From NCBI RefSeq assembly GCF_052425735.1, contig NC_135758.1, positions 6,820,001 to 6,884,000 on the forward strand: a DNA stretch of 64,000 nucleotides, given 5' to 3'. Shown here one piece after another: positions 13,741 through 47,846 of this stretch. The notes below the pieces were generated by a model, which worked only from the letters and a program-made list of their open reading frames with translations, searched no databases and was not told the origin of the DNA. This DNA comes from Oculina patagonica. Taxonomy: Eukaryota. The first letter of the stretch is position 1. Each line of letters opens with the position of its first letter. A program made the translations under genes and the position numbers.

Positions 13741-16700
13741 AGTAAAGTTTGTGGGTCAACTACTGATGTGGAACACCTAGGGAAAAAATGAAATAAATAA
13801 ATTCTAGAGATACGACCTTTACTTGTAAATTATATTTAATTTATTTGCTCAGGCCAAAAACTTCTGTGCTTTTGACGACCTGAAACGGGATCAAATCACT
13901 GCACAGTCTGCGCGTGCATGTTCAATATCGCAATATGTTTTTGGTCAATGTATTCAAGATCATCCATGTCTTGAATTTCATCTTCTCCTTAACTCGGCAC
14001 GACTGAGGCGATCAATTTTAACTCAGTCAACCCCCCCCGGAAAGACAGCCGGAGAAAAATCTGAGACCTGCACACCTCATAAAGATCGGCCCGAACCCCG
14101 GAAACAAACCTTGCACGCCTAAACAGCTAGAACGGCGCCACTTTAACTGGCGACTAGGAAACACGCAAGTAGAAATACCCCATCAGAAGCACAAATTTTC
14201 ATAAAATAATGTGGAAACATTTAGAAGGTAAAAACAAAAAAGCACAAGGCTGCAAAGCTGTAAAGCCTAGTATTTTTGTAAAATACAGCATGGATATATA
14301 ACCCTCAATCGGTATTTTTAAATGTTTCGCACGGCATCAGGATCACTTAGAGAGGATTATACGCCGTATGCAACTAGCAATAACAAAAAAGAAAATTTTG
14401 TATATTAAAGCTTCTTACATGTTATACAGAGTAATGTTTAAATTTTATACTTGTAATCTCAGCTTATAGACAAAGCGAAGTTTAACTGAAAGCCCAAACA
14501 GACAAGTAAATTTGGTACTTGTTTTGCATTAGCGTTTATAAATGGCGTCCAGTCAGCCAGATTTAACTTATTGGTTATTCTTTTTTCTTCGCTAGATTTG
14601 AAGATAAAGAAAGAACTAAAGAAACGGCTATTATCAAGAGGCAAGATGCAATTCCTTCTGATTTATCTTAAACATTGAACATTTGCTACGTGGGCATTAA
14701 AATAATTGCGATTACACTTACCGTCGGTTGCCTAATATTGATATTATACAGCACCTCAGTTCTGAAGCCCCAGTTCATGGATCCTTCACGGACAGAGATT
14801 TAAAGATTGCAGTTTGTTTATGTCCATGGAGGACATCAACTGGCTTCCTACTGTAATTAATATGCAGATAATAAAAACCTGTTTGTACTTAAGAAACCAG
14901 TAGTTTTTGCTATGTAAATCTGAGTTTTTCCGGTAAAATGTGAATGATATCATCTCGGCAAAGAACAAAAAGATGCACTTGTCAGTCTAGCAAAGTTCAT
15001 ATTACTAGCATTATTATTGCGAATCTCCTGAGAATACAATCATTTCTCAGGCCCCTACTCCTGTATTACTGTGTCTAGTTTATTTTGAACAAAAAGCGAT
15101 TCTGAAAAGTAGAGGAAATTGCTTTTTTTCCCGTGACGTGTTGACTTATAAAAGCACTCGTCAACGCTCAAGGAAGACCGTCAACCAATGTCCTTTATGC
15201 GCTTTTGTTTTTATCACACGAAAATGTATCCCCCAAATTAGGAGAAAAATGAAACTATTTTCGAATTAAGAAGCAACTGGGTTTTAAAAGCAAGAAGCAC
15301 GCAATTTCATAAAAATGTCTCTTCAAAGATCCGTAATTTTCCGGTGGCCCTTTCAAGATGTGCTAGCCTACAATAAATCACCTCACTAGATTTTATCTTT
15401 GGTCTCCATTTCTAGTTGTATTGCATGAAATTATATGGAATATTCCATTGGCACAACTCCAAGCTTTTAGTAGAATTGAAGCCGTTTACAAAATCTTCAC
15501 AAACCCTAACTCTAACTCTCCCTTTTGTGTGAGAATGTGTGAAAGGCAGATGAAAGGTTAGGAAATAGAACAATACACTGGGGAACTCATGCCGTAAGAG
15601 AAACTTCCATGCGTGGTATACGGAACTAGTTGCAATTGCGAGTTTTCTTTACTATAGTGTGCACATGCTCACCATGTAATGTAAATTAAATTTTAGTTAA
15701 GGTAAAGGATTTACTGGATGTACACAGTCGAAGCTTTTATAACCAAATTTTAAAATTTTATTATGCCAGGCACGACTATAATAAAATCCTCGTAATGACA
15801 AAGTACACATGTCCATCCTTCGAGGTTTACTGACATTGAAAATGCAAATCGTTTTTAAGTTTGCTAATTAAAAAAATGGAAAGTTTAAAAAAGGTGGTTT
15901 CATAACAAATTTCTTCCGTAGTAAGTTTTCTGCTTAATGAGAAAACAAAAATATTTAGTAATAGTACGTTTGTTTGTTGATTTAATTACACTTCTGCACA
16001 GAGGTTACAAACAGAACAAACGAGGTAACAGTAACTTTGTTGAACATTCTTTTTCAACTGAGTACAAATTTACCCCGAGAAAAACGATTATTTTAACAAA
16101 AAGAAACGAGATAGCTTCAACATTGGCTTCACAATTTTTCAATAGATAAAAAGGAAACAGTATTTTTTTCCGGTGATTAATCAACGTAATCATCAAACAC
16201 TGTAGTTACTATGTTACTAATTGAACTATGTATTTCAAACACGAAAAAAAGGTTTTGAATAAAAATAAATTGCAATCTTGTTTTTTAGTCAAGGATAACT
16301 TACTGAACGCTTCATGTGTTTTGATTCCCCTATTTTCCGTCTTTAACATTTTGTTAAATAGTTGTAGTAAATTAAGAAACCTTCAGCAATCAGAGTTTCC
16401 ATTTTAAGGATGGGTGAAAGTTTTCTCTGACTTTTTTCTGCTGTCATTTTTGTAAAAATAATGAAAGTAAATTTCTACCCTAATTCAAATTATGACACAT
16501 TTAATAAACTCCAATTTTCTGCACGACAGTACTCTATTTAAAGAGGAACTATTAATTTACCTATATTTTCTTCGGTCCCCGGTAATTTAAGTATATGCCA
16601 GTCTTCACTAATAGTATTTAAAAATACATCCGGCAAAATGTAAAGAGTCTTTGAAGTTGTGGAAAGTAAGTCAGATTCTTGCAATGCAGATTTCTCTACT

Positions 16701-17103
16701 AATAAAACCATAAAACTAGGACATTTAGTTATTATCAATTATCCCATATCCCATCATTAGCTACCCAGTGCAACTAACTACAAAATTTTGCTTTTTTGAC
16801 GAAAAAGGGACATATGATGGAATCACATGCATTGTTGAACAAATTATTCCATTGTTACGAAAAAAAATAGGTATCTTGATAATTTCAATAATTGCTTAGA
16901 AAGTGCAAAACACCTTTAAGTTATCCGGTGAGAAACGACGTAAACGAAAAGCACCCTTCGTTCTCAGTTTTGTTTTTTCCATATATAATTCATTAAGTTA
17001 AAATTCTACCATGCGAAGGATAGCTTTTCATGTGCCAATTATCTAAAAGAAGAAAGTCATTAATTTAGAAACATTCTACAAGTTGAGTAACCTATCCGGC
17101 ATG

Positions 17104-17723
17104 AGAGGAGGGATTTTGGGGGCGTGCGTGAGCGGGAGGAAAATGGGGGAAGACATTGTTGTACTGTATCCACTTAAGACGTTCTAAGAAAAGTGTGGTG
17201 GAGGCAAGAGATTTCTGGCCTGCTCGGGAGGAAGGGGGGAGAGGCCGGAGGGAGGGGACACCACCAACGTGAGGGAGTAGGTGAGTGTGGGAGCCACAGA
17301 GGGAGGGGAGAATGGGGGACTCGCGGCCCCGAGCGGGGGTGAGGGGCGCAGACGTGAGGCGGGGAGTGACGAGAGGGCCACCGCAGGACCGACGGGGGGG
17401 GACATGGAGGGCCGAAGCCTGAACCAGCGAGCGACGGAAGAACCACGACCGACCCGCAGAGAAGACTGGCACGGGACGAGAGGGAGAGCGAAGGAGGGAC
17501 GACCCTCGCCCGGAACGACAGAGTATGTAGACTGTAGCGTACGGTCCGAGATCCAGCGGGGCGACAGTCGCCAGTCCGGGACAAAGCCAAGTGACAGAAC
17601 GGCACGCGACACAAAGATGGGGAAGAAGGAACACAGCTACACGAGGAAGGCGTGAAATATCGAAGCAGACCCGCGTGCGCACTAGCCCAATCGACGCATG
17701 CGCACGCAAAATGCCCTCCTGCT
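17104..17723. mobile_element. 620-bp GC-rich insertion with 9-bp TSD (Mutator-like non-autonomous element)
   Basis: tccggcatg at 17095-17103 and 17724-17732; the site is single in copy 2 (~37129-37137); imperfect TIR agaggagggatttt..gcgtgcg / cgcacgcaaaatgccctcctgct. Confidence 0.75.
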
Positions 17724-18284
17724 TCCGGCATGGCTAACGTAGTTTCGACATATTTACTTCTTTAGAAACCTGGCAAAATTTTCTTACTTAAAAAACAACT
17801 TGCATTTGTTGTCAATTAACTACACTGTCATCGCTTCTTCCGACACAAAAACGTATGACTAATTTTCATCTGTCATATATCAACAGTGCAATGTTAATCG
17901 CGCCCACGGTAATTTTTGTGCAAACTGAAGTTCCTAAAAGCAGTGAAACTGGTTTGGGTTTCAAACACCTATTTTGATTCATAGCTTACTTTTTGAGTAT
18001 GCGAGGATTCAGTTTTCCTTCTTAAAAGTTGACTTAAGGTGACTTACGATATAAGTGCTGTTGATTGTATATGGTTTATCAGATCTCGGTTCCTTCCTTA
18101 TTTAAAGTGGCTTACTTCCAACCATTCTTAACTATATGTGCCTATAAGAAAAAATCCTTGAGTTGAGAACAGAGGTATTCGTGGGCTTTGTTGCTGCCAC
18201 CCGCAGCCGTTGATAACTGCATACTTACAAGCAGCAAGGGAGACCAGAAGTAATACAAAACGTTTTCAGAGGAATAACAGCAAA

Positions 18285-19634
18285 ATGTCGCGAATGGCTT
18301 GCTTAGAGCAGTCATCCAAGGTGATGGACAAATCTGTTGACAACTCTTCCAGAAACAATCAGACTGAAGAAGGAACTACAAGTTTCAGCGAAGCTGAGCG
18401 TAACTTTAAGATTGTGTTCTACTGCTGTCTGTTCATTCTTGGTTCCTTGGGAAACCTCATGGTAATTGTAGTTGTAAAAGGAAAACGTAAACGAACTATA
18501 AATGATTATTTCATTTTAAACTTGGCGGTCTCAGACTTGACATTCGTGTGGTTTTCTATTCCTTTCTACACATATGAGCTTTTCCAGACATTCTACAAGA
18601 ACGTATTTTACTGTAAAATAATTTGGCCTATGATGTCAGTTACTCTTTCTGTCAGCGTTTTCACCTTAAAATCTATGGCAATTGAACGGTGTCGAGGAAT
18701 CATAAATCCATTACAACCGAGAGTCAAGCTGAAAGCCACCTTGGTTTGGATTCTATTTATATGGATCTGCGCTTTCGTCACGATGATTCCGCTGATAGTC
18801 GTAGCGCGGCCGGATAGTGTGCTGTGCTATGAAAAATGGCCGAAGACGCAATACCGGAAAGCCTATACCGCAGTGTTATTCGCACTTCAATATGCCAGCC
18901 CCTTGCTTGTCATCGCCATAGCATATTTTCGAATCGCCATTTGTCTCATTACATCTCGGCTACCAATGCTTACTTCACAAAACTCTCGCGGACAAGTTAT
19001 CAGACATAAGACAAGAAGTGAAAATGTTCAGATCATAAGAACATTAGCTGTTATTGTGATTCTCTTTATGGCCTGTATGTTACCCAATCAAATCGCTTGG
19101 ATGCTGTTTGATTTTGGTGGCGATTCACACAAAGAGCTTTCCCGCGCATTTTGGACCGGCGCGGAAGCGCTAATATATCTTCACGCATGCGTGAATCCTA
19201 TTGTATACGGATCTTTAACTCGTCAGTTTCGTCGAGGATATCTTCTATATTTCCGGTACGTATTCTGCTGCAGAAAAACCAGCATAAACTACTCTACCGG
19301 AACTTCGGAAAACCTTGCTAGTGCAAGAAAATCTCGATCAAAGCGAAGTGCAGTGGTACTTCATGGTTCTCTTAAGTTCAGGAGTTTAAGTGAAAAAAGT
19401 AGAACTACGCGCCTTGAAATGCAGTCTTCACCAGTTATGTCTACAAGTGGAGAGAGTAATCAGTTTGGAAGCCCTTCGCCTGGCGCCTCCCCTATCCCAG
19501 GATCAACCAGTGTGGAGATGCTGTTAAGAACATTCAAAAGACAAGAAACGAAAACACTTTTGAACTTGTCTTTCACTAACTCAGGTTTGGACGTTTCTGA
19601 TGACGAACAAAGTGTTCAAGACACAAAACTGTAA
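18285..19634 (+). CDS. Class A GPCR, neuropeptide receptor-like, 449 aa (cassette copy 1)
   Basis: First ATG at 18285 (the ORF track starts at an upstream TTG); GN, NLAVSD, ERC, CMLP, NPIVY; long Ser/Thr-rich C-tail. Confidence 0.95.
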   Translation: MSRMACLEQSSKVMDKSVDNSSRNNQTEEGTTSFSEAERNFKIVFYCCLFILGSLGNLMVIVVVKGKRKRTINDYFILNLAVSDLTFVWFSIPFYTYELFQTFYKNVFYCKIIWPMMSVTLSVSVFTLKSMAIERCRGIINPLQPRVKLKATLVWILFIWICAFVTMIPLIVVARPDSVLCYEKWPKTQYRKAYTAVLFALQYASPLLVIAIAYFRIAICLITSRLPMLTSQNSRGQVIRHKTRSENVQIIRTLAVIVILFMACMLPNQIAWMLFDFGGDSHKELSRAFWTGAEALIYLHACVNPIVYGSLTRQFRRGYLLYFRYVFCCRKTSINYSTGTSENLASARKSRSKRSAVVLHGSLKFRSLSEKSRTTRLEMQSSPVMSTSGESNQFGSPSPGASPIPGSTSVEMLLRTFKRQETKTLLNLSFTNSGLDVSDDEQSVQDTKL

Positions 19635-20980
19635 TTTACACATATGGCTCTAGGCGATTCGAACTTTGACCAAGCGAAAGTCGTTACACGATACCCGTTG
19701 CCTAACTTTTTCGTGTCTAGTGTCATATAAGGATAATCAACCGAAACTATAGGTCACAGAAAGTAACTTTCGCATGATTTTTCTTGGTGGGTAGTTGCAT
19801 TTGTAGGACCTCATTTAAAGCTGATTTCCAGTCCGTACTGCGAAGTCTCGGGGTTTGTTTCCATTTTTGTTTTGAATTCGTTGATACTTTACACTTCGGT
19901 AATAGCACACATGACATTCTTTAGTCCGCCATTACGAATTTGTTTCGCCCAGGAATGCTCGATGAGCTGAAAAGTCGGTTTGGAATAGCGTCGAGGACCT
20001 TTTACTCGTTATTATTGTTTTGCAAGGATATCTGGTGCTAATAATGAAGAAAAAGGTAAGTTTGTACCGGAATTTTGTATTTTTGCTAGTAAACATTCCT
20101 TTGTGTGAGATTGCGCAGTATAGACTGGAAATCATCTTTTAGTGGAGACAAGTCAAACTTATTCTTGTTGATTTTAACTAAAATAAAATTGTTTCTAATA
20201 TGAGAAAATTGGCAAATTGACATTTTGATTGTAGCCTGTGTCCCGCTCCGCTCAATGTTTTTTAATGGAGCGGGAGGGTTAACGTTGTACATAGGCTATT
20301 TGATTGTAAATAAAATATTACCTGTTACATGCATCTTAAGTTTTTCGTTGCTGTGTATCAGGGAAATGATATACAATGATGAAACAACGACGTTGCAAGG
20401 GTTTACACTTAATTGACCTTAATTGATCAAAATTTGCTAGGCGTGCACGTGGTCAGCGTTGCAATTGCTTCAGTCCGCTCGAAATCTAGACACCAAAACG
20501 ATTCTGCAAACGAAAAAGCATAATATAGGACCAAACCTGGGAGCGGGAGACTTTTTTAATAGCTCAAAAGCAAAACAAGGGAAAAAAAGACCGCGAAAAA
20601 AAAAACAGAAAACATTAAACATGGAAGTGTTACAGTTGATTCAGTTTAATACCCTAAATGTCACAATCATTTCCTTATTTATGTTTTTTTATCGTCCATA
20701 AATTTTCACTTCAGCTGGCTAAAGGGACAGGGTTAAGTACTTGACTTTTAAATTAATCCATGTGACATGTCTATATCTCGGGATTTTTCTTCTTAGTTAA
20801 AAAATACACATTAGTGATCTACAAATATTTTCGAGTCAACGAAACTTTAAAAGTCTGGATTGTTATTTGTACTACTGCTCATTTATCTTGTAAAATGTAA
20901 ATTTGTATTCTTGACCTCTATGGCACTACAGCTTCAAAGCATAGAAATAAATGATTTCAAACCACAGTTCATTTGCGTCT

Positions 20981-23900
20981 TTACTGACTAGCGGGGGAAA
21001 GTTTAATTCCAAGGATGCCACGCCAGTACTCGGTCACAAACACTTGGTCAGGATCCATCTCTTGCCGCAACTTCAACCAATCATTCATCTTTGGGTACAC
21101 GCCCTTCAGATAGTCTGGGTTGAACTTTGTGTTCCCGCATTGCTGATCCGGCAGGGGAAGGTACTTTCCCCAGTGCAGGCGGGTTCCAGGGATATCCAGC
21201 AACACATCCCAGTAGTATGAGAAGAACACCCTGAGATCGCCCTTGTTGTGAGCCCACCAGTAAGGATCAACTCGCACCATATCCTGTCCATATGACATGC
21301 TCAACCAGAATGGAGACTTCTTGGCGCCATAGATCTCTGTGGCAAAGTTGTTGGCGGCTTTCTGATTCTTGAACAGCTCCTGGAGTTTGTCCATGACGGT
21401 TTGACATTGGTTGAGTGGGATCCAAATCTCAGTGAAATCGACCCTGATGATAAAGTCGGTGTGAGCCTCGTCATCCATGGGAAGAGTCTCGTACCATACA
21501 TCGCGGAACATGACTGGTTTCTTATTAAGGGGCACAAATTGACGCAAAATGACGCCGATTATTTCGTAATCAATCTCTGTTGGTTCTGGCTTTTGCAGGA
21601 GAAAATTGCAGATAGCCAAGGCGATGGCTGCCATACCGGCCGCAAAGATGTTTTCTAAGATGGAATTGTAAGGCACAACGTCTCCAACAGCAAAAGACTG
21701 CTTTCCAACCCACTCCTGAACTCGCATCACTTCCTTCTGCGGGAACCAGTTCACTCGCATGTACTCGTGCTTTTCAAGGCTCTCCTTCAGTTTGCTCTCT
21801 CCTTTCTCGTTGGGTCCAAGCATAGAATCGGCAAACTCGTGATTTGACTCAGAACCTTCAACAAACTTCATTTCAGGAAGGCGGAATGTCACGTGGGTTA
21901 TGACGCCAAACAGCCCCATAGAAACACCGACTGCACACCAGAGGTCAGTCCCAGGCTTTGCCGTCTGAAGACGACCATTACCATCCACGAACTCGATCTC
22001 CTGTATTACGTCACCAAAGCTGTGCTGTAAGCTTCCCCCGGCAGAGCCTGTGGAGATAAAGCCGCCAATGGTCTGATGGATGATACCTCCTAGCTCGGGA
22101 AAGCCGAATCCATTGGCATTAACCTGATAACAAGCTGAGTCCTGTATGTCAGATGTTGGATCCATGGGATTATTACCCAGGTAGCAACCTGCGCCGATGC
22201 GACAGTACAGCCATTTCTTTCCACCAGCCTCTTCTATTTTTTGAATGTCTACTTTACGCAGATCCTTTGTCAACAGCAGGGTAACGCCACCCTTGGGAAA
22301 AATGGCATCTTTTACAGAATGCTCCGATCCAGCGACGCGAAGGGCTTTCTTTTCGTTTTTGGCTTTAAGAATGGCTTCTGTGACTTCCTCCACGGTCGAA
22401 ACAGGCGTAAGGTCGCGTTCTGCTGGCATAACTGGGGGTCCATGAGCCTCTTTCTTTTTCATCTCATCTTTTATCAGGTGAACCATAAGCGACTCCAACA
22501 GTTTGGCATCAGAAGCTTCGTCAATGAAAGGAGAGATTACTCTGTCAAAGAATGCTTTGGCCTCGGTCTCTCTTCCTGCCTGTGGAACTGCCTGAGGAGC
22601 TAAACAAAAATGATAACAAAAAATAATGAGACAAGGCGCAATGTTCTTCGCTTTTCAAGTTTAAATAGTAAGAAGCACGGCCTTCGTCTAAGACTTACCA
22701 TTATATTTAATTACTGCTTTTTTTAAAAACAATAAAAAGTGCCGGATCCGATTTTGTAAACTGAATTAAACCGCATCACATCAAAATTAAAATTGATGCG
22801 GCGCGCTTTCAAAAATCAGAAAAAATGGAACCTTTGGACGCCTTAGTAGATATACAACAGCATTTATGGTAAAGAGAGGGAGAGGTAATACCAATGACAA
22901 ACGTATTATACATCCACAAACGCATGGAATAGCTTGAGTTACTTAAGGGGCAGCATACGTTCGCAACCATCCCTGTGGCTCATTGAAATTAAAAAATACT
23001 AGCTAACAGGCAACTAAATCTCAGCACAGTGAAACCAGTGCTAAAGAAAAAGGATTTATAGATGCAGGCTCCTGATAGATGATGTTCTCAGTGTGACCTT
23101 ATCTGAGAAAGACATTATCACCCTTTTTTATCGCGAATTTCGCAAATTCATCCAACACGATCATCCATTTTTTAGTAAATGTAAATGTAAACGTTGTTTA
23201 TAGTGGTCATGCAGTTAGCTTTATATCACATCGAGACAGCTAGTTTACAGGCATGCCACTGAAACAGAAGAAACAAATATTTGCTTAACCAAAGCTTAAG
23301 CGAACCTTAACCGAGCTAAACCGAAGTTCATTTGTTCATTTTTCAGAACGAATCTAAAAAAAATATCACCGCTGTTTCCAGCAGGCCACTTCAAATCTTG
23401 AAAAGATTCCAATAAAACGCATCTTATTCTCGTCTGGTAAACAAACACTCTCGATAAAACATCATAACAACCACTCAAGTGTTGCATGTGGGAAGGAAAA
23501 TCCTGCAGAAGGCGTTTAAGTCAGAGTAAAACTGAATTCGTTGACTTTACAAGTGAATGTCTTCGTCCATTCTTTCAGCTTGGATATAATGTGTTTTGTC
23601 ATTCACATTTGTCAATTAAAGTTTCATTTCAAGAGCCAATATATCCCTGGTAGCTATATTAATTAATAAAATTATAAACGATATGGCAACGCAATTTCGA
23701 TATACTTATTTTTACATACTAATGTGATTTTGTTCACTTTGCTTTAAAGAGTATGACGTGTGTTTTGTAATATGCCATAATAATCTCTCTGGGTTTTGTA
23801 CTGGAGATAAGACCAGAATTAAAATATCCACCTTTTGAATTTTTTGCACCTTTGTTTCTTGTTCACTTTGATATCCGCTTTAGCTATCAGTTGTCAGCTA

Positions 23901-27537: not shown

Positions 27538-27562
27538 GTTAACAAACTATTTCGTCCAGTCA

Positions 27563-34375: not shown

Positions 34376-34410
34376 CTTGATAATGGAGTCAAGATGACTC
34401 CAAAACGTCG
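34376..34410 (+). ncRNA. Degenerate minimal hammerhead ribozyme-like motif at the Penelope 3' end
   Basis: cttgataat + 7-bp stem ggagtca/tgactcc + aaaacgtc (GAAAC expected). Confidence 0.45.
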
Positions 34411-35101
34411 AGCAGTATTAAATCTTTCTTGGTTCTTCTTATATTCATTGTATTGATATTAGTATTAGTCTAGTTTTTTTAGTTTTTAGCAGTGTCCCCT
34501 AATTAGCATGGTGTATTATTCCCAGGCTATAAGGTTATGACACTTTAATAAAGTTCTCACTTACTCACTCACACTCAATTATTGCAAACATTCACTCATA
34601 ATTCACCCATTTACTCATAATATTTAAAGTGTGTTAGACTCTTTCATTCACAACTGCAAAAGTGATAATATTATACTTCCAGGGTTACATGCATGCGTTA
34701 CTAAATACATTTAGTAAATCAATCATACTTTCAATGTTCTCCACCCCTGGATGAAACCACTGGCAAGTTAAGCCATGAGTGAGATTTGCGGTTTCACTAC
34801 AAAATTATGGAAATTCAGACTTATAGCCCTCTTTCTCCCAGGTCTTAAAAGGTCTGGTAAATTTAAATCAAACAATATTTTAATCAAATTGAATCAATAC
34901 TTCATTTGAAATTTTGCTTGATCATCAAACACCGAGCATAGTCAATTGATAAACAGGTAGTTGACAAAAATCAATGAAGCAATAAAATTATTATGAGTTC
35001 AATTGCTTTTTATTGCTAAAAGAAAATCATAAGGCAGGGATAAAGTTTAAAGCTGGGAGCTTGGTAGATTAGAATACTGACTTGTTTGTTGCATGAATCT
35101 T

Positions 35102-35290
35102 AAGGTCTCCGCACACGTGGGGACATGTCGCAGGGACACTTCGTAGCGACATGTAGAAGTGACAAAATCATGCGTTGCGCACGCTGAGGAGATGTGGAAC
35201 GGTGACATGTAGCAGCAACAATATCACAATGTGTACACATGCAAGAAAATGTAGCGGAGACATGTTCCAGGGACATGTCGCAGTGAAATG
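35102..35290. mobile_element. Truncated Harbinger-like MITE next to the copy 2 breakpoint
   Basis: taa|ggtctccgcacacg start followed by repeated gggacatgtcgcag/gcgacatgt motifs; second end not found. Confidence 0.5.
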
Positions 35291-37682: not shown

Positions 37683-39032
37683 ATGTCGCGAATGGCTTGC
37701 TTAGAGCAGTCATCCCAGGTGATGGACAAATCTGTTGACAACTCGTCCAGCAACAATCAGACTGAAGAAGGAACAACAGGTTTGAGCGAAGCTGAGCGTA
37801 ACTTTAAGATTGTGTTCTACTGCTGTCTTTTCATTCTTGGTTCCTTGGGAAACCTCATGGTAATTGTAGTTGTAAAAGGAAAACGTAAACGAACTATAAA
37901 TGATTATTTCATTTCAAACTTGGCGGTCTCGGACTTAACGTTTTTGTGGTTTTCTATTCCTTTCTACACATATGAGCTTTTCCAGACATTCTACAAGAAC
38001 GTATTTTACTGCAAAATTATCTGGCCTATGATGTCAGTTACTCTTTCTGTCAGTGTTTTCACTTTAACGTCTATGGCAATTGAACGTTGTCGAGGAATCA
38101 TAAATCCCTTACAACCGCGAATCAAGTTGAAAGCCACCTTGGTTTGGATTCTACTTATATGGATCTGCGCTTTCGTCACGATGATTCCGCTGATGGTCGT
38201 AGCGCAGCCAGATAACGTGTTATGCTATGAAAAATGGCCGAAGGCTCAATACCGTCAAGCCTACACCGCAGTGTTATTCGCACTGCAATATGGCAGCCCT
38301 TTGCTTGTCATCGCCATAGCCTATTTAAGAATCGCTATTTGTCTCGTTACATCTCGGCTACCAATGCTTACTTCACAGAACTCTCGCGGACAAGTTATCA
38401 GGCATAAGACAAGAAGTGAAAATATTCAGATCATAAGAACATTAGCTGTTATTGTGATTCTCTTTATGGGCTGTATGTTACCCAATCAAATTGCTTGGAT
38501 GCTGTTTGATTTTGGTGGCGATTCACACAAAGAGCTTTCCCGCGCATTTTGGACTGGCGCGGAAGCGCTAATATATCTTCACGCATGCGTGAACCCAATA
38601 GTATACGGATCTTTAACTCGACAGTTTCGTCGAGGATATCTTCTATATTTCCGGTACGTATTCTGCTGCAGAAAAACAAGCATAAACTACTCTACCGGTA
38701 CTTCGGAAAACCTTGCTAGTGCAAGAAAATCTCGATCAAAGCGAAGTGCAGTGGTACTTCATGGTTCCCTTAAGTTCAGGAGTTTAAGTGAAAAAAGTAG
38801 AATTACGCGCCTGGAAATGCAGTCTTCACCAGTTATGTCTACAAGTGGAGAGAGTAATCAGTTTGGAAGCCCTTCGCCTGGCACCTCCCCTATCCCGGGA
38901 TCGACAAGTGTAGAAATGCTGTTTAGAACATTCAAAAGACAAGAAACGAAAACACTTTTAAACTTGTCTTTTACTAACTCAGGTTTTGAAATCTCTGATG
39001 ATGAACAAAGTGTTCAAGACACAAAACTGTAG
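37683..39032 (+). CDS. Class A GPCR, neuropeptide receptor-like, 449 aa (cassette copy 2)
   Basis: ATG at 37683, same 1350-nt length as and colinear with 18285-19634; same motifs. Confidence 0.95.
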   Translation: MSRMACLEQSSQVMDKSVDNSSSNNQTEEGTTGLSEAERNFKIVFYCCLFILGSLGNLMVIVVVKGKRKRTINDYFISNLAVSDLTFLWFSIPFYTYELFQTFYKNVFYCKIIWPMMSVTLSVSVFTLTSMAIERCRGIINPLQPRIKLKATLVWILLIWICAFVTMIPLMVVAQPDNVLCYEKWPKAQYRQAYTAVLFALQYGSPLLVIAIAYLRIAICLVTSRLPMLTSQNSRGQVIRHKTRSENIQIIRTLAVIVILFMGCMLPNQIAWMLFDFGGDSHKELSRAFWTGAEALIYLHACVNPIVYGSLTRQFRRGYLLYFRYVFCCRKTSINYSTGTSENLASARKSRSKRSAVVLHGSLKFRSLSEKSRITRLEMQSSPVMSTSGESNQFGSPSPGTSPIPGSTSVEMLFRTFKRQETKTLLNLSFTNSGFEISDDEQSVQDTKL

Positions 39033-40345
39033 TTTACACATATAGCTCCAGGCTAGGCGAACTTTGACGAGGCAAAACTGTTATTTGTTACTTGTTGCCA
39101 ATCTTTTACGTAACCAGAGTCACATTAGGCCAGGGTCACAAAAGGTAGCATTCGCGTGCCTCTTCTTGGCCGTTAGTTGTAATTAAAGTGGTAGGGATCG
39201 AAGTCAGCCGTACTTTTGTTTATTTCAGTGCAAAATGAAAATGTCTCTAGTGTGAGTAATATGGCAAATTGACATGTTGATTGCAAATAAAAGATTATCG
39301 GTCACATTGCATCTTAGGTCTTGTGTTCCTATGTAGAAAGAAAATGAAATGAACGACGTTGTGAGGACCTTCAACTCGCAAGCTATTGAGGAGGAAAAAA
39401 TTAAACGAAAAAGCTAAAAATTTGCTAATTTATTTTTGTAATCATACAGAAAGTAATCGGAATTTGCTGGGAGTGGTCTCTCTCTTAGCGTTGCAACCTT
39501 CCATTCTGCTCGGAAGCTACAATGGAGGTAAAAAATATTTGGTGCACTTGCGATAAGGAGCATTGGGTAGGGAACGAGATACTCCTAGGAATGAGACCGT
39601 GGATTCTGTACGCTCCGAAGTCCCCAATTCCCCTCTCCCAAGCCGTCCCTCTCCCCCGGTCCCCAAGTTATGTTGAAAAACATATATGTCGAGATCTTGG
39701 TATGCGAGATGGTCAATTCTCAACATTGCTTGGGGGAGGGGGCTAGCAGTCATTTAATTAGCCCACAATAATCCATGTGTCTCAACATCATGACACCAAG
39801 GACTCTGCAATCGAAAACGCTTAAACACAGAACCAAATTTGGGAGATTTTTTGTGTAGCTCAACAACACAAAATAGAATCAAGACCAAGAAAAGAGACAC
39901 GAAACAATAAAAAAGAAGCAGGTATTACAGTTGATTCAGTTTAATAGCCTGACGCTTAAATGCCACAATCACATAAAAAACTTAATTGAAATGCTGGCTG
40001 GCACTACGGCAAGGGCACTTTGAATGAACCATATCCCAATGTTCAATCATGAGCAATCACGTCCTAACGTTTTTTATATTGTCCATATTTTTCTCTCTTC
40101 AGCTAGGCTGGATAAAGGAGAAGGGTCAAGTACTGGGCTTAGAAGCTAAGCCTTGTGACAGATTATGATTATATCTCAAGACATTCCTTATTAGTTGATA
40201 ATAATACATCAGTGATCTGCAAAATTTTGTGTTTAAAAATATGCAACTACGAGCGTTTGATTGTTATTTGCGCTAATCATTTCTCATAAAATTGCAAGTT
40301 TGGATTCTTGACCTCCATTAAATAAATGAGTTCTGTCCACTTAGT

Positions 40346-43300
40346 TCACTTGCTTTCCTCTTCACTACTAGTAGGAGCAGGAGTGGGAGGTTCAATGCCG
40401 AGGATGCCACGCCAGTACTCGGTCACAAACACTTGGTCAGGATCCATCTCTTGCCGCAACTTCAACCAATCATTCATCTTGGGGTACACGCCCTTTAGAT
40501 AATCTGGGTTGAACTTTGTGTTCCCACATTGCTGATCCGGCAGGGGAAGGTATTTACCCCAGTGCAGGCGGGTTCCAGGGATATCCAGCAACACATCCCA
40601 GAAGTACGAGAAGAACACCCTGGGGTCACCCTTGTTGTAAGCCCACCAGTAGGGATCAACTCGCACCATATCCTGTTCATATGACATGCTCAACCAGAAT
40701 GGAGACTTCTTGGCGCCATAGATCTCAGTAGCAAAGTTGTTGGCGGCCTTCTGATTCTTGAAAAGCTCCTGGAGTTTGTCCATGACGGTTTGACATTGGC
40801 TGAGTGGGATCCAAATCTCAGTGAAATCTACCTTGATGATAGAGTCGGTGTGAGCCTCGTTGTCCATGGGAAGAGTCTCGTACCATACGTCGCGGAAGAT
40901 GACTGGTTTCTTTTTGAGGGGCACAAATGGACGCAAAATGCCGCCGATGATGTCGTAGTCAATCTCTGTTGGTTCTGGCTTTTGTAGAAGAAAATTGCAG
41001 ATAGCCAGTGCGATGGCTGCCATACCGGCCGCAAAGATGTTTGATAGGATGGAGTTGTAAGGCACTACCTTTCCAACAGCAACAGACTGCTTTCCAACCC
41101 ACTCCTGAACACGCATGACTTCCTTCTGCGGGAACCAGTTAACACGAATGTACTCGTGCTTCTCAAGACTTTCCTTCAGTTTGCTTTCTCCTTTCTGGTT
41201 GGGTCCAAGCATAGAATCGGCGAACGTGTGATCTGATTCGGAGCCTTCAACAAACTTCATTTCAGGAAGGCGGAACGTCACGCGGGTTATGACGCCAAAC
41301 AGACCCATAGAAACACCAACTGCACACCAGAGGTCTGTTCCAGGCTTCGCCGTCTGAAGACGACCATTACCATCCACGAACTCGATCTCCTGGATTACGT
41401 CACCAAAGCTGTGCTGCAAGCTTCCCCCGGCGGAACCTGTGGAGATAAAGCCGCCAATGGACTGCTGGATGATACCTCCTAGCTCGGGAAAGCCGAATCC
41501 ATTGACAGCAACCTGATAACAAGCGGAGTCCTGTATGTCAGATGTTGGATCCAGCGGATTCTTACCCAGGTAGCAACCTGCGCCGATGCGACAGTACAGG
41601 AATTTCTTTCCACGCCAGCCAGTCTTTTCTGTCTTCAGTATTTCTACTTTGCGTAGATCCTTTGTTAACAGCAGAGTAACGCCATCATTGGGAAATATGG
41701 CATCTTTTACAGAGTGCTCCGATCCAGCGACACGAATGACTTTCTTTTCCTTTTTGGCTTTGAGAATGGCTTCTGTGACTTCTTCCACGGTCGAAACCGG
41801 CGTAAGGACGCGTTCTGCTGGCAAAACTGGGGGTCCATGAGCCTCTTTCTTTTTCATCTCATCTTTTATCAGATGAACCATAAGCGACTCCAATAGTTTA
41901 GCATCAGATGCCTCGTCAATAAAAGGAGAGATTACTCTGTCAAAGAATGCTTTGGCTTCGGTCTCTCTTCCTGCCTGCGAAACTTCCTTTGGAGCTAAAC
42001 AAAAATTATAAAAAAATAATGAGACAAGACGCAATGTTCTTCGCTTCTCAATTCTTTATAGGAAAAAGCACGGCCTTCGTCTAAGACGAGGTCTTAGCTT
42101 AGTAGATATGCAACAGTATTTATGGTAGATCATTTGGGAAAGTTTTAACCCTATTCAGACCGGGGCGGGGGGGGGGGGGGGGCTATTGAGGCCCGCGCTG
42201 ACTTTGAACTCTTATCTGACTGTTTTAAGATTTAACCAAACGCTGTCAAACTGTCTGAGTTTTCCTAAAATTTATCTAGCAATAATTTGGTAGGGTTGGA
42301 TGATGTGTCGGGAACTTGACATCGCCATGGCAACCACATTTTGGCAGGCATTTTTTTCCCAAATTTGTAATTTTGCGTGTTTCTTTTAATAAAAGTTAAC
42401 TGAAATGGAACTATTTTTACATTTTTACGGGTTTAAAGCACATTTTTACTGATTTTGAATACTTTGCAGTCATTTTGGGTTGTTTTTTTGGCATTTTGGA
42501 AAAATTTTGAAATCCAGGATGGCGGCTGTTTTGACATCATGATGTAATTGCCACGTGATGTGACGTCACCATCCCACGTGACGTATACCAAAAGAAAGAT
42601 GTTCAAACATACAATGCATCCTATAAGTTTTCCTATAAGTTTTATTGTGATTGCTCCCCCCCGGTCAGACAAGCCCGGTCTGAATAGGGTTAACTGAGAG
42701 AGGTTTACTAATGAAAAACATGTTATCCACAAACCCACAGAATCACAGTTACTTAAGGGGCAGCATACGTTCGCAACCATCCCTGTGTCTCATTTAAACA
42801 AAACAAAAACATCGACAAGCAAATTTATCTCAGCAATGCGAAACCAGTGCTTTAGAAAATGAATTGATAGGTGAGTGTTTCCATGTGAGCCTTTCGTGAA
42901 TTTCGCAAATTCATTCGACGCATGGAATCTAATTAGAAAAGACTGTTTTTTTTAAATTAAATTTTCAAAGTTTTAGTGGAAGCAAAAAATTAATACACAA
43001 ACACATTTCAAACAAACAGGAAATTTTCGTCAAACAAACATTTCTTCAAGAAGGCAAGACATCGTTTATCCCTTAGGGAGGCTTGATGTAGTTTTTTTAG
43101 CCGAAGGGTGGTTGTTTTGAAAATTAAAATTATCTAGGAAGCCAATGTTCGATTTTTGGCAAAATACACCATAATGATCAAATATGACCAAATTTTAATT
43201 TTTGACCCGTCACTTAGTCACAAAGGTTACCATAGCAACGATTGACGATTTCTTTTGTTCTCAAACAAGCTTGATTTTCTCGAAATCTAGATTGACACTT

Positions 43301-45874
43301 GGTGTTTATTTTTTGATATGTTAAAGTTTAGTAGATTGACTAACTGTTGACGAAATTTTGGAAAAATCTGTAAGAGCGTTTTCAAGTAAATCACGAATGA
43401 AATTTTCAGAAAAACACCATTTTAATATAAAATAGGCGCTTTAAAATTGTTTCGTATTATTTGAGCACAGTTACTCTCATTGAAATATAAATACTTACAC
43501 CACCAAAGACCATTAACTAAGCGAAAGACTGCTTGCTTTAATTTGTTAAAATATATCGACTGCCGATTGTAGGAAATTATAAGAGAATACCAAAAACTTC
43601 ATTCTTGATTTACTCTAAAACGCTCTTACAAATTTTCCTTAAAATTTTGTGCACAGGTGGTCAATCTACTATACTTGAACATATCAAAAAATGAACACCA
43701 AGAGTCAATCTAGATTTCGAGAAAATCAAGCTTGTTTGAGAACAAAAGAAAACGTCAATGGTTGCTATGGTAACCTTTGTGACACAGTGACGGATAAAAA
43801 ATTAAAATTTGGTCGTATTTGATCATTATGGTGTATTTTGGCAGAAAACTAACATTGGCTTCCCAGATAATTCTAATTTTCAAAACAACCACCCTTCGGC
43901 TAAAAAAAAAACTACATCGAGCCTCCTTAAAAGCTCGAACAAGGGAACGTCTTCTTACTTAAACCCTTAGCCAAAGTTCATTTGATAATTTTTAGAACGA
44001 CTCTAAACAAATAATACCGCGGTTTTCAGGCCACTCCAAATCTTGAAAAGATTCAAATAAAACGCATCTTATTACTCGTCTGTCAAACCGGAAAAACTTT
44101 CAGTAAAACATTAAATAACAGCCACTCAAGTGTTGCACGTGAGAAGACAAATTCTGCAGAAGGCGTTTTAGTCAGAGTAAAATTGAATTCGTTGAATTAA
44201 TTTACAAGTAAATGTCTGCTTTTGGATGTCATATGTTTTGTTATTCAAATTTGTCAAATACAGTTTCATTTTAAGAGCCAATATATCCCTAGTAGCTATA
44301 TTTAATGATAAAATTATAAACGATATGGCAACGCAATTTCCATATACTTTTACATAATAATTTGATTTTGATCACCTCGTTTAAAAAGTATCCGGCCTCA
44401 AGAGTCCTCATGGGCTCGATGAGGATGAGTGAGTGAGTGAGTGTTTAAAAAGTATGACATGTGTTCTGTAACATATCATCATTTTCTCTACGGTTTTGTA
44501 CTGGAGATAAGCCCAAATTTTAGATATCTGGCACCTGTGATTCTTGTTCGCTTTGATATCCGCTTAATAAATAAGCTATCAGTTGTCAGCTATATTTGAA
44601 GGACAGCGTGTTTATTTATTAGAACTAAGACAGCATGCTACTAGTGATCAGCATATTACACAAGCCACAAGCCAGATCACATAAGCCTTTAGAACGTTTA
44701 GGGAATCGAAAATAATAATGTGCAAATTAGCGTTTGGACTATTTAAAACTGTTAATATTATCTTGTTGATTAAAACCCTTATAAATTAATCCCGATTTGA
44801 GTAAGTGTAGTCATAACAGTTCTCGAATAGTACAATATCTTCTGTCTGGAGAATGCAGAAGCTATTTGATATAATAACAAACAGATCGTGCTTGCACGCA
44901 AAGTTGTTTTGCTCATCAAGAAAGACGAGGAACATTTTCAAACAAGAGAGTATTGTTGCAAATGATCAAAGTAATCACACACTCTGTTTTAAAGCCATCC
45001 AAATTACATAAAGGAGTCCCTCCTCTTTTAAATAGCATGCAAAACGGTTTCCACCTTGTAGGCAACTGTTGAAATACTGCTTTCATAATTTTCTAAGTCG
45101 TTCAATTTGCAACAGTCCCCCGGGGGGGGGGGGACTCCCATATTAAAGGGACGGGGATGCTCGTCGGAAATTTTGAAAAGAACCCCTAAAAGAGACCAAT
45201 CTGGGCGTGGCTCAAGCTATTTTGGACCCCTAAAAGATACCAAAATTCTTAAAAGAGGATTTATATTTGTAAATTTCTTCGTGTGTAACCCTAAACAAGA
45301 CCATTGTGCCTAAAAATATTGGCGTTTTGCCTGGAACACCCAAAGCGAGACCAAAAATCCGAAATTTACACCCCTAAGCGAGACGACGAGCATCCCCGTC
45401 ACTTTCAAAAGCGAGTCCCCCCCCCCCCCCCCGGGAACAGTCCAAAGCTCCTCTAAATTGCAGACAAAACGGTTTTCTGCCCCAGGGTATATATTTCAAA
45501 GTATCGCTGAGGTCATAAAAGCGAAACATGCCCTTGATGCTAGCTCCGTTATGACAAACATTCATGACAGTCTGCACCGATTAGTTCAAAAGCGCGTTTT
45601 AAATCTCCTTCGTGTACTGTTTCAGGTAGAGTCGACAAAGGTGTTTGCCGCGAGGTCTTCATTCCTTGACTCAAACCTGACTCAAACCTGAGTTTTCGAT
45701 TTCTGATGTTTCGAGTGCAATTGATTTCTGATGTTTCGAGTGCAATTGATGGTGTACACTAATTAATAAGCATTTGAATGGCTGGATTTAAACGCTGACT
45801 GTTACACTGAAACAATAACAAAACTCCGAGATATGTGTGTGAATGCAAAGAGGCTTACCTGCTTCTTCGGCCAT
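40346..45874 (-). CDS. FAD-linked oxidase, FAD_binding_4 + ALO-type, copy 2; exons 45874-45859 and 41994-40346; 554 aa
   Basis: Same motifs; exon 1 ATGGCCGAAGAAGCAG|gtaagc and acceptor ttttgtttag at 41995-41996 are conserved with copy 1. Confidence 0.9.
42149..42689. mobile_element. piggyBac-like MITE in oxidase copy 2 intron
   Basis: TTAA|ccctattcagaccggg ... cccggtctgaataggg|TTAA. Confidence 0.9.
43077..43926. mobile_element. 850-bp foldback element with ~330-bp TIRs, TTAA-type target (Kolobok- or Sola3-like)
   Basis: ttag|ggaggcttgatgtag ... ctacatcgagcctcc|ttaa; arms ~43077-43405 and ~43595-43926 are reverse complements. Confidence 0.85.
44392..44442 (+). mobile_element. 51-bp 3' stub of a LINE (RTE-like) with (TGAG)n tail
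   Basis: 13-bp TSD gtttaaaaagtat at 44379-44391 and 44443-44455; absent from copy 1 (~23742-23755). Confidence 0.75.
44700..45665 (-). pseudogene. Possible degenerate ankyrin-repeat gene inside oxidase intron 1
   Basis: Fragments LPETVHEGDLKRAFELIGAD.., and in the paralogous copy LIGAD*NVCHNKASEKGMNKNIV, resemble ankyrin consensus; many stops and frameshifts. Confidence 0.3.
45119..45435. mobile_element. hAT-like cccggg MITE, 8-bp TSD
   Basis: TSD aacagtcc at 45111-45118 and 45436-45443; absent from the other two copies of this intron segment. Confidence 0.9.
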
Positions 45875-47846
45875 TTTTTGTTGGATGCACGTTTCTTGCT
45901 AATTGAAATTCAAACCGAAGACGACTTTTACAAACACGCAGTTATACTAAGTGCCGCTGGCGGTAAAGTAATCGATCAGACACTCCCTAGCATTTTATAG
46001 CCTCTGGATGATTGGTGGGGCTGACGATAAACCTGTTTTTCCAGTATTTTCAGCTACAGCTACTTTGCATGATCGACTAACCGAGGAGGAGATGATTAAT
46101 TAGGACAGAAAAGCGAAGCAATTGGTCATAACAGTTGACAGGGTTATCAGGTCGAGGGCTCTTGGAGTAATACGAAAGTTTGCAATCAACCACATAATTT
46201 CCATGCTCGGTGATCAAAAGCAGACGTCAATATTATTCGGAACGAACTCGGATGTTTACGTTTGGACAACAAATGTTGGAGGTGTATGTTTTAAGAAGTA
46301 CAACATTTGCAAAGATTGTACAATAAGGCAATTATACTGCTAAGTGTTTCTGTATGGTCACATCACCCAGCTGTGTTTACCCCCAGGCATTGTACTCTTG
46401 AAAATGAAATTACCCGACGGCAAAGGAAACGTTTAGCAACGCACGTAAATAGAGGGTAAATAGCGCTGAGAAGCCGTGAGATTCTTCGAGCCTCAGCGCG
46501 TATTATCGAGTTTTCGTCTAAAACGTTAATATGCAAATGCTTAACCAGAGCTTTCCATCTCATTTAGCTGGAAAAAAAAAGGTTTCAAACAGAATCTCGA
46601 AACAGAAAAACATTCACATCTGGTTACCATCGGTTGTTTGAGCCCCGCCGAACATACGAATATTACTTATTGCTCAAATACACTTGATAGGTCTTGATAC
46701 TTACTTGATCCATGTTATTTTGAATTCTCGTGATTCCATATGGGTGACCCCAAATTCAATTCAGTGCTAAATGGTTACAAATCGTGCCTAGACTCATGAA
46801 TCATTCCCCGCTCTTAAAAGTGAATGCAAATTTGTTTATATGCTTGGGAAACATTCCATTGTTTCAATTTGGAACGACTCTATCAGTAGCTTTTACCAAT
46901 TGATCTTGCTTAGCAGATATCAGTAAACCAACCTAATCGAAACATTAACCTCTTTGTAACAGAACTGAAACAATTGCAGAACCTCAGTAAGAGTTGAAAT
47001 ATTGATACACATCTGGAATATCTTCAGGGCACCACAAAACGCCTTTATCTGTTATACGTTGATTGGTTAACAGGCGATGGTATATGAGTTCATATAAACC
47101 ATGGACCACAAATATAGTGGGTGTACGCGTCAACGAGAACAGCTGGGGAGCTCAAATATTGCAATTCTTTAGGTGTTCATAAAACAATTATTCCACTCGC
47201 GCTTGTTGGATATAAGATAGTTATACCCATTTCGGCGCTACGCGCCTTGTTGACTATCTACCATAATTGTCAAATATGACCCCAGTCAGTTTGGTCATGA
47301 AAGTATTAAGGGCCCGCGCGCTTCAAGTTTCCTTCTCCCCAATCTCCCTACGCTTTATTGAAAGCGCAACCTCGTACCCAGGGCCATCTCCGCTTCGCAC
47401 GAAGGAAACACTGCGTGGGACAGAGCTGATAAAAAGGCACACTGAGGTGTAGTGTCCTGTAATTTTTCATGTACTTTTTCCAAAACTTGAGGAAGTGTTT
47501 CATCAGGGCATCCAAATATTGAGAAAGAAACGAAAGGGGAGGGCGTAGGCAACAACAACGTCCTTCGAGATATTTGGAAACCGAAAAATGTGGAAGATGA
47601 GAAAAAAAGTGTAGATAATGCTGTGCCGAAATCAACAGCTTATAAAACCAAATTGTCGTGTAAATTGTTCGAGAATCGGAAACTGAATCGATTAGTGATC
47701 AAGTGCTGTACTTTGAACTGATTTTTGTCAGAAAATCAAAGCCGAGAAGTTAATGTTTTATACTGACCCGATGACAAAGGACGGTTAATAAAGTTTTGTG
47801 GGCAGCGGTGGAGCAATTTATTCAGACCCACTGTTCATTTAGAATT

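Follow-up and report, generated by a model that had tools for sequence, protein, structure and literature searches.

Tandem duplicates make up about 30% of the genes in long-read coral assemblies, and the rhodopsin-like GPCR is the domain most commonly amplified among them (Noel et al. 2023, Genome Biol 24:123; PMC10236652). For one receptor group of this class, the closest described members are those of the sea anemone Nematostella. In the tree files of a screen of 64 peptides and 161 receptors, Nv_GPR25 groups with GPR21 (HIRamide) and GPR26 (FLRNamide), and it carries no 'deorphanized' tag in the supplementary files, though it was among the candidate receptors (Thiel et al. 2024, eLife 12:RP90674). 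Here we describe a 64,000-nucleotide stretch of contig NC_135758.1 of the stony coral Oculina patagonica (hereafter the window), in which a GPCR gene and a flavin oxidase gene were duplicated together. Like the tandem clusters described in corals (PMC10236652), the Oculina copies lie on the same strand within a rhodopsin-like GPCR array, are genus- or species-specific in age and have been retained. Unlike those clusters, the Oculina unit consists of two unrelated convergent genes, whose pairing is much older than the duplication. The word 'oxidase' has 0 occurrences in the main text of PMC10236652, and our search of the coral literature for this oxidase found nothing usable.

The blastn self-comparison of the window yielded collinear, same-strand blocks between copy A (11,974 bp) and copy B (10,883 bp), with identities of 67-93% and a spacing of 19.4-20.0 kb. 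The features of the two copies are as follows, in window coordinates.

15013-26986, no strand assigned: duplicated unit, copy A, in collinear blastn blocks with 35347-46229
15891-17103, no strand assigned: block upstream of GPCR A, 96-100% identical among A, B (partner 35921-37137) and the unplaced contig C1675
17104-17723, no strand assigned: A-specific insertion of 620 bp upstream of GPCR A, seen as a gap between collinear blocks, with no counterpart in B or C1675
18285-19634, plus strand: GPCR A, single-exon CDS, 449 aa (database protein P0121), Pfam 7tm_1 with E 7e-41
19635-20629, no strand assigned: spacer from the GPCR A stop to the oxidase A poly(A) site, with a high-copy repeat at 19670-20260
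20630-20980, minus strand: 3' UTR of oxidase A, 351 nt, with an ATTAAA signal some 15 nt ahead of the poly(A) site (~20630)
20981-22599, minus strand: exon 2 of oxidase A, the CDS except its first 16 nt, with coverage in RNA-derived contigs (runs X7 and X13)
22600-26616, minus strand: intron of oxidase A, 4017 nt, GT..AG, with a high-copy repeat (23019-23412) and about 2 kb of A-only inserted sequence
26617-26632, minus strand: coding part of exon 1 of oxidase A (MAEES plus one base), with the 5' UTR extending upstream to at least 26648
26987-35346, no strand assigned: inter-unit spacer, with a 0.9-kb secondary duplicate and retroelement remnants
35347-46229, no strand assigned: duplicated unit, copy B, in collinear blastn blocks with copy A
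37683-39032, plus strand: GPCR B CDS, 449 aa, 94% identical to GPCR A, Pfam 7tm_1 with E about 1e-41
40346-41994, minus strand: exon 2 of oxidase B, retaining all 85 family-invariant or near-invariant residues
45859-45874, minus strand: coding part of exon 1 of oxidase B (MAEEA plus one base), followed by GTAAGC

Collinear, on the same strand and with the same gene set on one contig, the two units constitute a tandem segmental duplication. They lie at the margin of an array of class-A GPCRs, represented by four further 7tm_1 ORFs in the window and by more directly upstream on the chromosome. An earlier sequence-only reading of the window had described such an array and, beside it, a co-duplicated convergent cassette with four intact genes and intact oxidase splice sites, and this description holds: the collinear blocks contain two 449-aa GPCRs and two oxidases of 544 and 554 aa, the oxidase A intron is bounded by GT..AG, and the oxidase B model has no internal stop. 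The facing stop codons, put at ~1.3 kb apart, are separated by 1346 bp in A and 1313 bp in B. The same reading had the unit running from ~3 kb upstream of the GPCR to ~350 bp upstream of the oxidase. The latter limit is accurate (354 bp in A and 355 bp in B, counted from the ATG), but the former applies to A alone, in which the unit starts 3.27 kb upstream of the GPCR ATG, the 620-bp insertion included; the start in B is at 2.34 kb. As for the many TE insertions reported in introns and spacers, we found copy-specific insertions, including a second A-only insertion at 24552-26570 and a B-only insertion of about 1.1 kb at 42874-43970, together with the two high-copy repeats of copy A, but most of them are not classed as particular TEs. 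Between the units, 27563-28492 is a copy of 23989-24917 (93% identical), and retroelement remnants comprise RVT_1 (28598-29041) and a weak GIY-YIG match (29147-29557).

By domain and motifs, the receptor is a full-length class-A (rhodopsin-like) GPCR. The 7tm_1 match spans profile positions 1-260 of 260, and the motifs ERC, CMLP and NPIVY, the first two being variants of the E/DRY and CWxP consensus and the third of NPxxY type, are present in all three copies (A, B and that on C1675). The sea-anemone branch of the coral GPCR clade includes EDO40106, which is Nv_GPR25 (57% identity over 64% of the query). We accordingly place the coral GPCR, by its sequence, as an orthologue of Nv_GPR25 within the HIRamide/FLRNamide/LRWamide receptor group, in agreement with its earlier description as neuropeptide-receptor-like. 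The corals differ from Nematostella in having three sub-clades of this receptor, a single one of which is linked to the oxidase. The characterised relatives, GPR21 and GPR26, bind amidated peptides; the coral GPCR is an orphan that resembles such receptors.

Both oxidases carry Pfam FAD_binding_4 (PF01565) followed by ALO (PF04030), with scores above the cut-offs. The AF2 model (pLDDT 87.5) matches the folds of AldO, GalDH and DprE1, and we assign the protein on these grounds to the alditol-oxidase/aldonolactone-oxidoreductase/DprE1 branch of the VAO/PCMH superfamily. The His-flavin type proposed from the letters alone is supported by H99, the His of the GxxHS motif, which does not vary among 39 homologues and is kept in both A and B, the covalent bond to FAD being putative. 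The HWGK motif (H481-K484) is likewise invariant. Among solved structures, AldO of Streptomyces coelicolor (PDB 2vfr/2vfs) is the best match (sequence E 2e-10; Foldseek E 4e-22, TM 0.80 over the target). The coral oxidase shares H99, E427 and K484 (of HWGK) with AldO, but is only 18% identical to it and exceeds it in length by about 120 aa; its N-terminus is disordered and helical, and a hydrophobic helix occupies 323-340. In the alignment, the Arg of the AldO E-x-R is replaced by Tyr429. The Glu-x-Arg pair binds substrate in sugar 1,4-lactone oxidases, and the roles of the AldO-aligned residues (the His, Glu, Arg or Tyr and HWGK Lys) in the coral oxidase are putative.

The coral oxidase resembles GULO, ALO and plant GalDH in its FAD_binding_4 and ALO domains, it carries HWGK, and the fold matches extend to the GalDH structures 8qnb and 7sml. 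We nevertheless rejected a canonical GULO identity (TIGR01678 75.2 bits against a curated cut-off of 396.8); better candidates for it exist among further ALO-domain loci of the genome, which are multi-exon. Outside the corals, the nearest relatives are proteins of sea cucumbers, glomeromycete fungi and myxobacteria (42-48% identity). No Acropora, Montipora, Porites or anemone name appeared among the best 120 oxidase matches, although the GPCR search did return such names, which suggests that the oxidase may be missing outside the robust corals. We failed to find a signal peptide at the oxidase N-terminus, and the protein is probably intracellular.

Public RNA data bear mainly on oxidase A. Its spliced translation is identical to the annotated 544-aa protein P0001, for which a protein of Oculina patagonica is a 100% match, and a contig of run X13 confirms the junction of exons 1 and 2 (overhang 26619-26648) and carries a 15-T overhang before 20630, which is the poly(A) tail. 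The oxidase A mRNA is hence spliced and polyadenylated. Oxidase B has an intron of 3864 nt and encodes 554 aa with zero internal stops; a contig with B-type bases in another run, which is a mixed contig, hints at expression of copy B. The GPCR is represented by small low-depth contigs only among the contigs of public runs, and a literature search for an Oculina single-cell atlas found nothing usable. As each 11-12 kb unit contains the upstream DNA of both genes, each copy can be expressed independently.

Divergence between the copies was measured as dS 0.186 and dN 0.024 for the GPCR (omega 0.13), and dS about 0.26-0.27 and dN 0.042 for the oxidase (omega 0.16), giving the dN/dS comparison that had been proposed as a check on the cassette. 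Zero family-invariant oxidase residues differ between A and B. All four genes are intact and under purifying selection. In both gene trees, the nearest other species is sister to a single clade made up of A, B and C1675, and the duplication appears specific to the Oculina lineage. The A-B dS of the oxidase (0.26) compares with 0.30 to the nearest other species, and that of the GPCR (0.19) with 0.40.

The two units could in principle be uncollapsed haplotypes, or a mis-join, of one cassette. C1675 (9.2 kb) lends this some weight: it carries a further GPCR-oxidase cassette, 96-97% identical to B in the flanks and the oxidase, which may be a third paralogue or a divergent, uncollapsed haplotype of B. 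A and B themselves, however, stand in tandem on one 49-Mb contig, and their dS (0.19-0.27), the 23-33% difference in the spacer and their distinct insertions argue that they are not alleles; even a dS of 0.19-0.26 is far above the allelic level, and we rejected A and B as haplotypes, a reading held out earlier as fatal to the cassette. Furthermore, one RNA-derived contig has the A-specific 5' UTR and exon 1, the contig of another run has B-type bases, and comparable tandem arrangements exist in independent assemblies of other corals. We regard an assembly artefact as very improbable.

C1675 is informative in another respect. Site patterns group B with C1675 against A in the spacer and the oxidase (217, 59 and 53 sites), group A with C1675 against B in the proximal promoter of the GPCR (58 sites), and take a star-like form across the GPCR CDS and 15891-17103. 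Such mosaic similarity points to gene conversion, mainly in the GPCR half. The aligned sites show that unequal exchange or gene conversion partly homogenised this half and made the mosaic copy C1675. The 15891-17103 block would be either recently homogenised or strongly constrained.

The pairing is not confined to this species; such confinement would have counted against the earlier reading. Among the coral assemblies surveyed, tail-to-tail GPCR-oxidase adjacency was found in Oculina, Pocillopora, Stylophora, L018 and L024, and possibly in one more. The order is Ox, Ox, GPCR, pseudo-Ox, GPCR in Pocillopora meandrina, and Ox', TE, GPCR, Ox, PPTA in Stylophora pistillata. The genes of L024 branch deepest in both gene trees. 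In Pocillopora, the dS between GPCR1 and GPCR2 (0.32) is well below that to Oculina (about 1.3-1.5), so the cassette was duplicated independently there. PPTA adjoins the oxidase in both pocilloporids; we rejected it as a third gene of the conserved block, given its absence from the Oculina window, with the nearest matches >1 Mb away.

One explanation for this persistence is a receptor-enzyme module, in which the oxidase would supply the GPCR with a small diffusible ligand or modulator (or local H2O2), or would break it down, and selection keeps the genes linked and co-duplicates them. Convergent adjacency in at least five coral genomes, including the deep-branching L024, duplication of the cassette as a unit at least twice independently (Oculina and Pocillopora), purifying selection on all four Oculina genes and the survival of the pair beyond its PPTA flank are all consistent with such a module. 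If it is real, Nv_GPR25 could be without a deorphanised tag after the 64-peptide, 161-receptor screen because its ligand is non-peptide. Nevertheless, the oxidase has no N-terminal signal peptide, and the substrates of its structural relatives are polyols, sugar lactones or ribose, whereas the nearest characterised relatives of the receptor bind amidated peptides. The two genes also part company: in Pocillopora the oxidase was also copied on its own, as seems to be the case in the P0046 assembly; one Pocillopora cassette kept its GPCR while the oxidase decayed; and in two other assemblies the 10 kb to either side of the oxidase contain no GPCR. The sister GPCR clade lacks an adjacent oxidase of this family, as the sea-anemone orthologues probably do, and coral genomes commonly carry tandem copies of segments that contain GPCRs (PMC10236652). 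We consider the module unlikely. The same holds for its more specific form, a scleractinian signalling module in which a cytosolic or membrane-associated AldO-like oxidase would make or remove a small non-peptide ligand, or local H2O2, acting on a receptor descended from peptide receptors, with co-duplication diversifying matched pairs; we find it doubtful. The sequence-only reading had offered module and hitch-hiking without choosing; its structural part stands, and our observations do not establish the module.

Alternatively, the tie could lie in transcription, with a shared 3' region (overlapping 3' UTRs, a terminator or enhancer, or antisense interference) coupling two genes whose products are biochemically unrelated. 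The orientation is convergent in every genome seen with the pair, and stop-to-stop distances run from 292 bp (L024) through 0.94-0.97 kb (Stylophora, Pocillopora) to 1.3 kb (Oculina), where the oxidase A 3' UTR alone fills 351 nt of the gap. On the other hand, the gap widens to 2.2 kb in L018, and 5.5 kb separate the oxidase from the nearest 7tm gene in the P0046 assembly. The GPCR-oxidase spacer is moreover the least conserved portion of the Oculina unit (67-77% identity between A and B) and bears a high-copy repeat, which argues against a conserved shared element. Coupling of this kind seems to us improbable.

We favour an old tandem segmental duplication, specific to the Oculina lineage, of two genes that are ancient and closely packed neighbours and for which no biochemical link is needed, and give this reading a probability of roughly 0.7. 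The pairing would have been inherited from early scleractinians and would have persisted through packing so tight (0.3-2.2 kb between stops) that few rearrangements separate the genes undamaged. Long ago in the Oculina lineage, the ancestral tail-to-tail pair would then have been copied in tandem as an ordinary segmental duplication, the tight packing carrying the oxidase along with the GPCR as a neighbour. Tight packing may suffice to hold the pair together. Two observations sit less comfortably with plain neighbourhood: (i) the adjacency has outlived the flanking synteny (PPTA) across robust-coral families and a deep lineage, which also fits selection for linkage, and (ii) that both oxidase copies were kept while a dS of about 0.26 accumulated cannot be taken for granted.

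As a duplication, the locus is nothing unusual for a coral genome. The lead is that an orphan branch of the cnidarian peptide-receptor family keeps the same uncharacterised flavin oxidase tail-to-tail across distantly related stony corals, and that the two have repeatedly been copied together. Were selection not behind the linkage, the locus would still be a clean case of concerted evolution in one half of a duplicated unit and not in the other. If it is selected, the locus would be an animal example of a receptor-enzyme gene cluster, and the substrates or products of the enzyme would form a rational ligand shortlist for a receptor that peptide screening has yet to deorphanise.

The window self-comparison resolved a tandem, same-strand duplication of two units, copies A and B, which are aligned in collinear blocks of 67-93% identity. 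Each unit comprises a GPCR gene on the + strand and a convergent gene for a flavin oxidase with FAD_binding_4/ALO domains, encoded by two exons. The window (G000:C1:6820001-6884000; 38% GC, in a 529 Mb assembly) contains four short N runs, all of which lie outside the duplicated units. The features are as follows.

15013-26986, copy A of the duplicated unit (self-comparison)
35347-46229, copy B of the duplicated unit (self-comparison)
18285-19634, + strand, GPCR A CDS; single exon, 449 aa, class A, 7tm_1 E ~1e-41
37683-39032, + strand, GPCR B CDS; single exon, 449 aa, class A, 7tm_1 E ~1e-41
26632-26617, - strand, oxidase A exon 1 (16 nt coding), followed by a GT..AG intron of 4017 nt
22599-20981, - strand, oxidase A exon 2
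45874-45859, - strand, oxidase B exon 1, followed by an intron of 3864 nt
41994-40346, - strand, oxidase B exon 2

The joined oxidase A model is 100% identical to an annotated 544-aa protein of Oculina patagonica (P0001), which places the source among stony corals of the robust clade, and the oxidase B model encodes 554 aa with no internal stop. The facing stop codons are separated by 1346 bp in A and 1313 bp in B, and the units end 354 bp (A) and 355 bp (B) upstream of the oxidase ATG. Every structural statement that the sequence-only reading had made on this cassette was borne out by the self-comparison and gene models. The GPCR array it described is also real, as four other 7tm_1 ORFs are found in the window and more related ones just upstream on the chromosome. 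A 0.9-kb segment of the oxidase A intron (23989-24917) recurs directly at 27563-28492, just past the end of unit A, with 93% identity; the segment is single in copy B. Between the units, weak RVT_1 and GIY-YIG ORFs within 28598-29557 represent mobile-element remnants, possibly Penelope-like, and a DUF3504 plus tyrosine-recombinase ORF downstream of the units (60454-61197) is possibly Crypton- or DIRS-like.

Divergence between the copies was estimated by the Nei-Gojobori method. The dN/dS comparison proposed in the sequence-only reading gave omega values of 0.13 for the GPCR (dS 0.186, dN 0.024) and 0.16 for the oxidase (dS about 0.26-0.27, dN 0.042). The intergenic spacers are only 67-77% identical, and the copies bear different insertions. 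This divergence is far above the allelic level, so the copies are not haplotypes and the duplication is old. An assembly artefact, in which A and B would be uncollapsed haplotypes as the sequence-only reading had considered, is essentially excluded by the dS values (0.186 and 0.27), the spacer identity and the differing insertions. No sign of decay or runaway of either copy was seen in residues, motifs or relative rates: both oxidases keep 35/35 invariant and 50/50 near-invariant family residues, the ERC, CMLP and NPIVY motifs are retained in every GPCR copy, and the rates of A and B are symmetric relative to the nearest other species.

Only three oxidase matches were detected genome-wide, namely A, B and one on C1675 (G000:C1675:1-9236), an unplaced 9.2-kb contig of the same assembly, which also bears a GPCR and thus carries a third cassette. 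The contig matches B at 96-97% identity across the left flank, spacer and oxidase (oxidase B-C1675 dS 0.085). Its GPCR is equidistant from the two copies (dS 0.158 to B and 0.170 to A), and its GPCR promoter is A-like. We counted positions at which two of A, B and C1675 agree against the third, and the patterns shift abruptly along the unit. B and C1675 agree against A at 15643-15890 (38 sites vs 1), and this pattern also dominates the spacer, with 217 sites, and the oxidase, with 59 and 53. In the proximal promoter of the GPCR, it is A and C1675 that agree against B (58 sites vs 13 and 10). Star-like patterns were found over 15891-17103, where very few differences exist among the three, and in the GPCR CDS. 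Oxidase dS between A and B amounts to 87% of that to the nearest other species (0.26 vs 0.30), but the corresponding figure for the GPCR is only 46% (0.19 vs 0.40). The simplest reading is that the unit was duplicated once, long ago, and that gene conversion or unequal exchange then acted repeatedly on the GPCR half and on the DNA upstream of it. C1675 is either a third tandem paralogue or a haplotype of B that has diverged strongly and been reshaped by gene conversion.

Oxidase A is transcribed and spliced as modelled. In X13, a public sequencing run behaving as RNA, one contig joins exon 2 of oxidase A to an overhang exactly matching the exon 1 and 5' UTR specific to A (26619-26648), so the predicted splice is used. 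A second X13 contig stops at ~20630 in a run of 15 T on the + strand, which on the oxidase strand reads as a poly(A) tail; the poly(A) site lies 15 nt past an ATTAAA signal, giving a 3' UTR of 351 nt. GPCR A was represented by only two small low-depth contigs (18888-19204); expression levels cannot be ranked from contigs. A 1466-nt contig of a second run, X7, labelled as another individual or species, is A-type over 21620-22477 and has the base of copy B at 23 of the 33 listed variant sites over 21092-21619; this contig represents either a recombinant allele or A and B transcripts merged by the assembler.

Among solved proteins, the one closest in sequence to the oxidase is alditol oxidase (AldO; E 2e-10), which is also closest to the AF2 model (pLDDT 87.5; TM 0.80 over the target), followed by L-galactono-1,4-lactone dehydrogenase and then DprE1. 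H99 (in GxxHS), E427 and H481-W482-G483-K484 are invariant in the family. Tyr429 of the coral oxidase aligns with the Arg of the Glu-x-Arg of AldO; we take the roles of these positions to be those described for AldO and GalDH. Canonical gulonolactone oxidase was rejected as an identity, as the scores fall far under the curated cut-offs of sugar-lactone oxidase families and the genome has further multi-exon loci with an ALO domain (G000:C4:53793673-53796158, C9:724175, C6:13970973 and C5:6490823), which are candidates for the canonical enzyme. The hydrophilic, disordered N-terminus shows no signal peptide on inspection, and the model places a hydrophobic helix at 323-340; the enzyme is probably intracellular and perhaps membrane-associated. 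The only intron of the gene interrupts the CDS after 16 nt. The family is patchy, its closest non-coral relatives (42-48% identity) being in sea cucumbers, glomeromycete fungi and myxobacteria, which may reflect either ancient patchy loss or horizontal transfer.

The sea-anemone branch of the coral GPCR clade includes Nematostella EDO40106/XP_001632169, which is Nv_GPR25 in Thiel et al. 2024 (PMC11087051). The cloned Nv_GPR25 is listed there among candidate receptors without a 'deorphanized' tag, and in the trees of that study it clusters with the HIRamide receptor GPR21 and the FLRNamide receptor GPR26. The GPCR is thus an orphan within a peptide-receptor family.

Linkage confined to Oculina or its close relatives, which the sequence-only reading held to speak against a receptor-enzyme module, is not what we found, as the adjacency is shared by Pocillopora, Stylophora and the assemblies L018 and L024. 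A, B and C1675 group together as a single clade in both trees, sister to the database proteins P0002 and P0018 in the oxidase tree and to the GPCR adjoining P0002 in the GPCR tree. The gene orders are as follows.

L018: oxidase then GPCR, convergent, 2.2 kb between ORF ends
Stylophora pistillata: GPCR then oxidase, convergent, 0.94 kb apart; PPTA past the oxidase and, upstream past a retroelement, a second oxidase-like stretch
Pocillopora meandrina: PPTA, oxidase, oxidase, GPCR1, oxidase remnant with stop codons, GPCR2
Pocillopora meandrina GPCR pair: L017:12550-19249 (CALNXJ010000032.1), decayed oxidase with stop codons at 15694-16161
L024: oxidase P0043 and GPCR P0155, convergent, 292 bp between ORFs

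In their respective trees, P0043 and P0155 are the deepest-branching coral sequences, and P0004 with P0127, which lie on contigs of equal length, suggests one more case of adjacency. The pairing is much older than the Oculina duplication, dating probably from early scleractinians. The annotated 707-aa 7tm_1 receptor of P. meandrina is a fusion of two separate intact GPCR ORFs; as GPCR1-GPCR2 dS is 0.32 vs 1.3-1.5 to Oculina, the cassette was apparently duplicated independently in Pocillopora, with one oxidase then lost. PPTA adjoins the oxidase in both pocilloporids and is absent from the Oculina window, the nearest PPTA-repeat matches on the chromosome being 1.1-1.3 Mb away. In the L025 and P0066 assemblies the oxidase has no GPCR within 10 kb, and no oxidase was found near the GPCRs of a sister clade, among them the Oculina paralogue at C1:3.645 Mb as well as Desmophyllum P0140 and Stylophora P0153. 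That paralogue (G000:C1:3645422-3646750, L007) is a fourth GPCR of this family; it has 73% identity and lies 3.2 Mb away without an oxidase. None of the best 120 oxidase matches is named from Acropora, Montipora, Porites or anemones, where the GPCR has named relatives.

Retention of both pairs could reflect a functional receptor-enzyme module, as the sequence-only reading proposed beside hitch-hiking. We consider such a module unlikely. The two genes need not stay paired, as is shown by the decayed oxidase of Pocillopora, by oxidases duplicated on their own and by lineages in which the genes are unlinked. A purely regulatory coupling via convergent transcription would be a third option, and is about as unlikely. 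Corals abound in tandem duplications and the GPCR is the most amplified domain (PMC10236652), so the Oculina duplication is ordinary in kind. Tight packing would be a sufficient neutral reason for linkage and co-duplication. Most likely, the duplicated unit just happened to take in the oxidase, probably the tail-to-tail neighbour of the receptor since early scleractinians.
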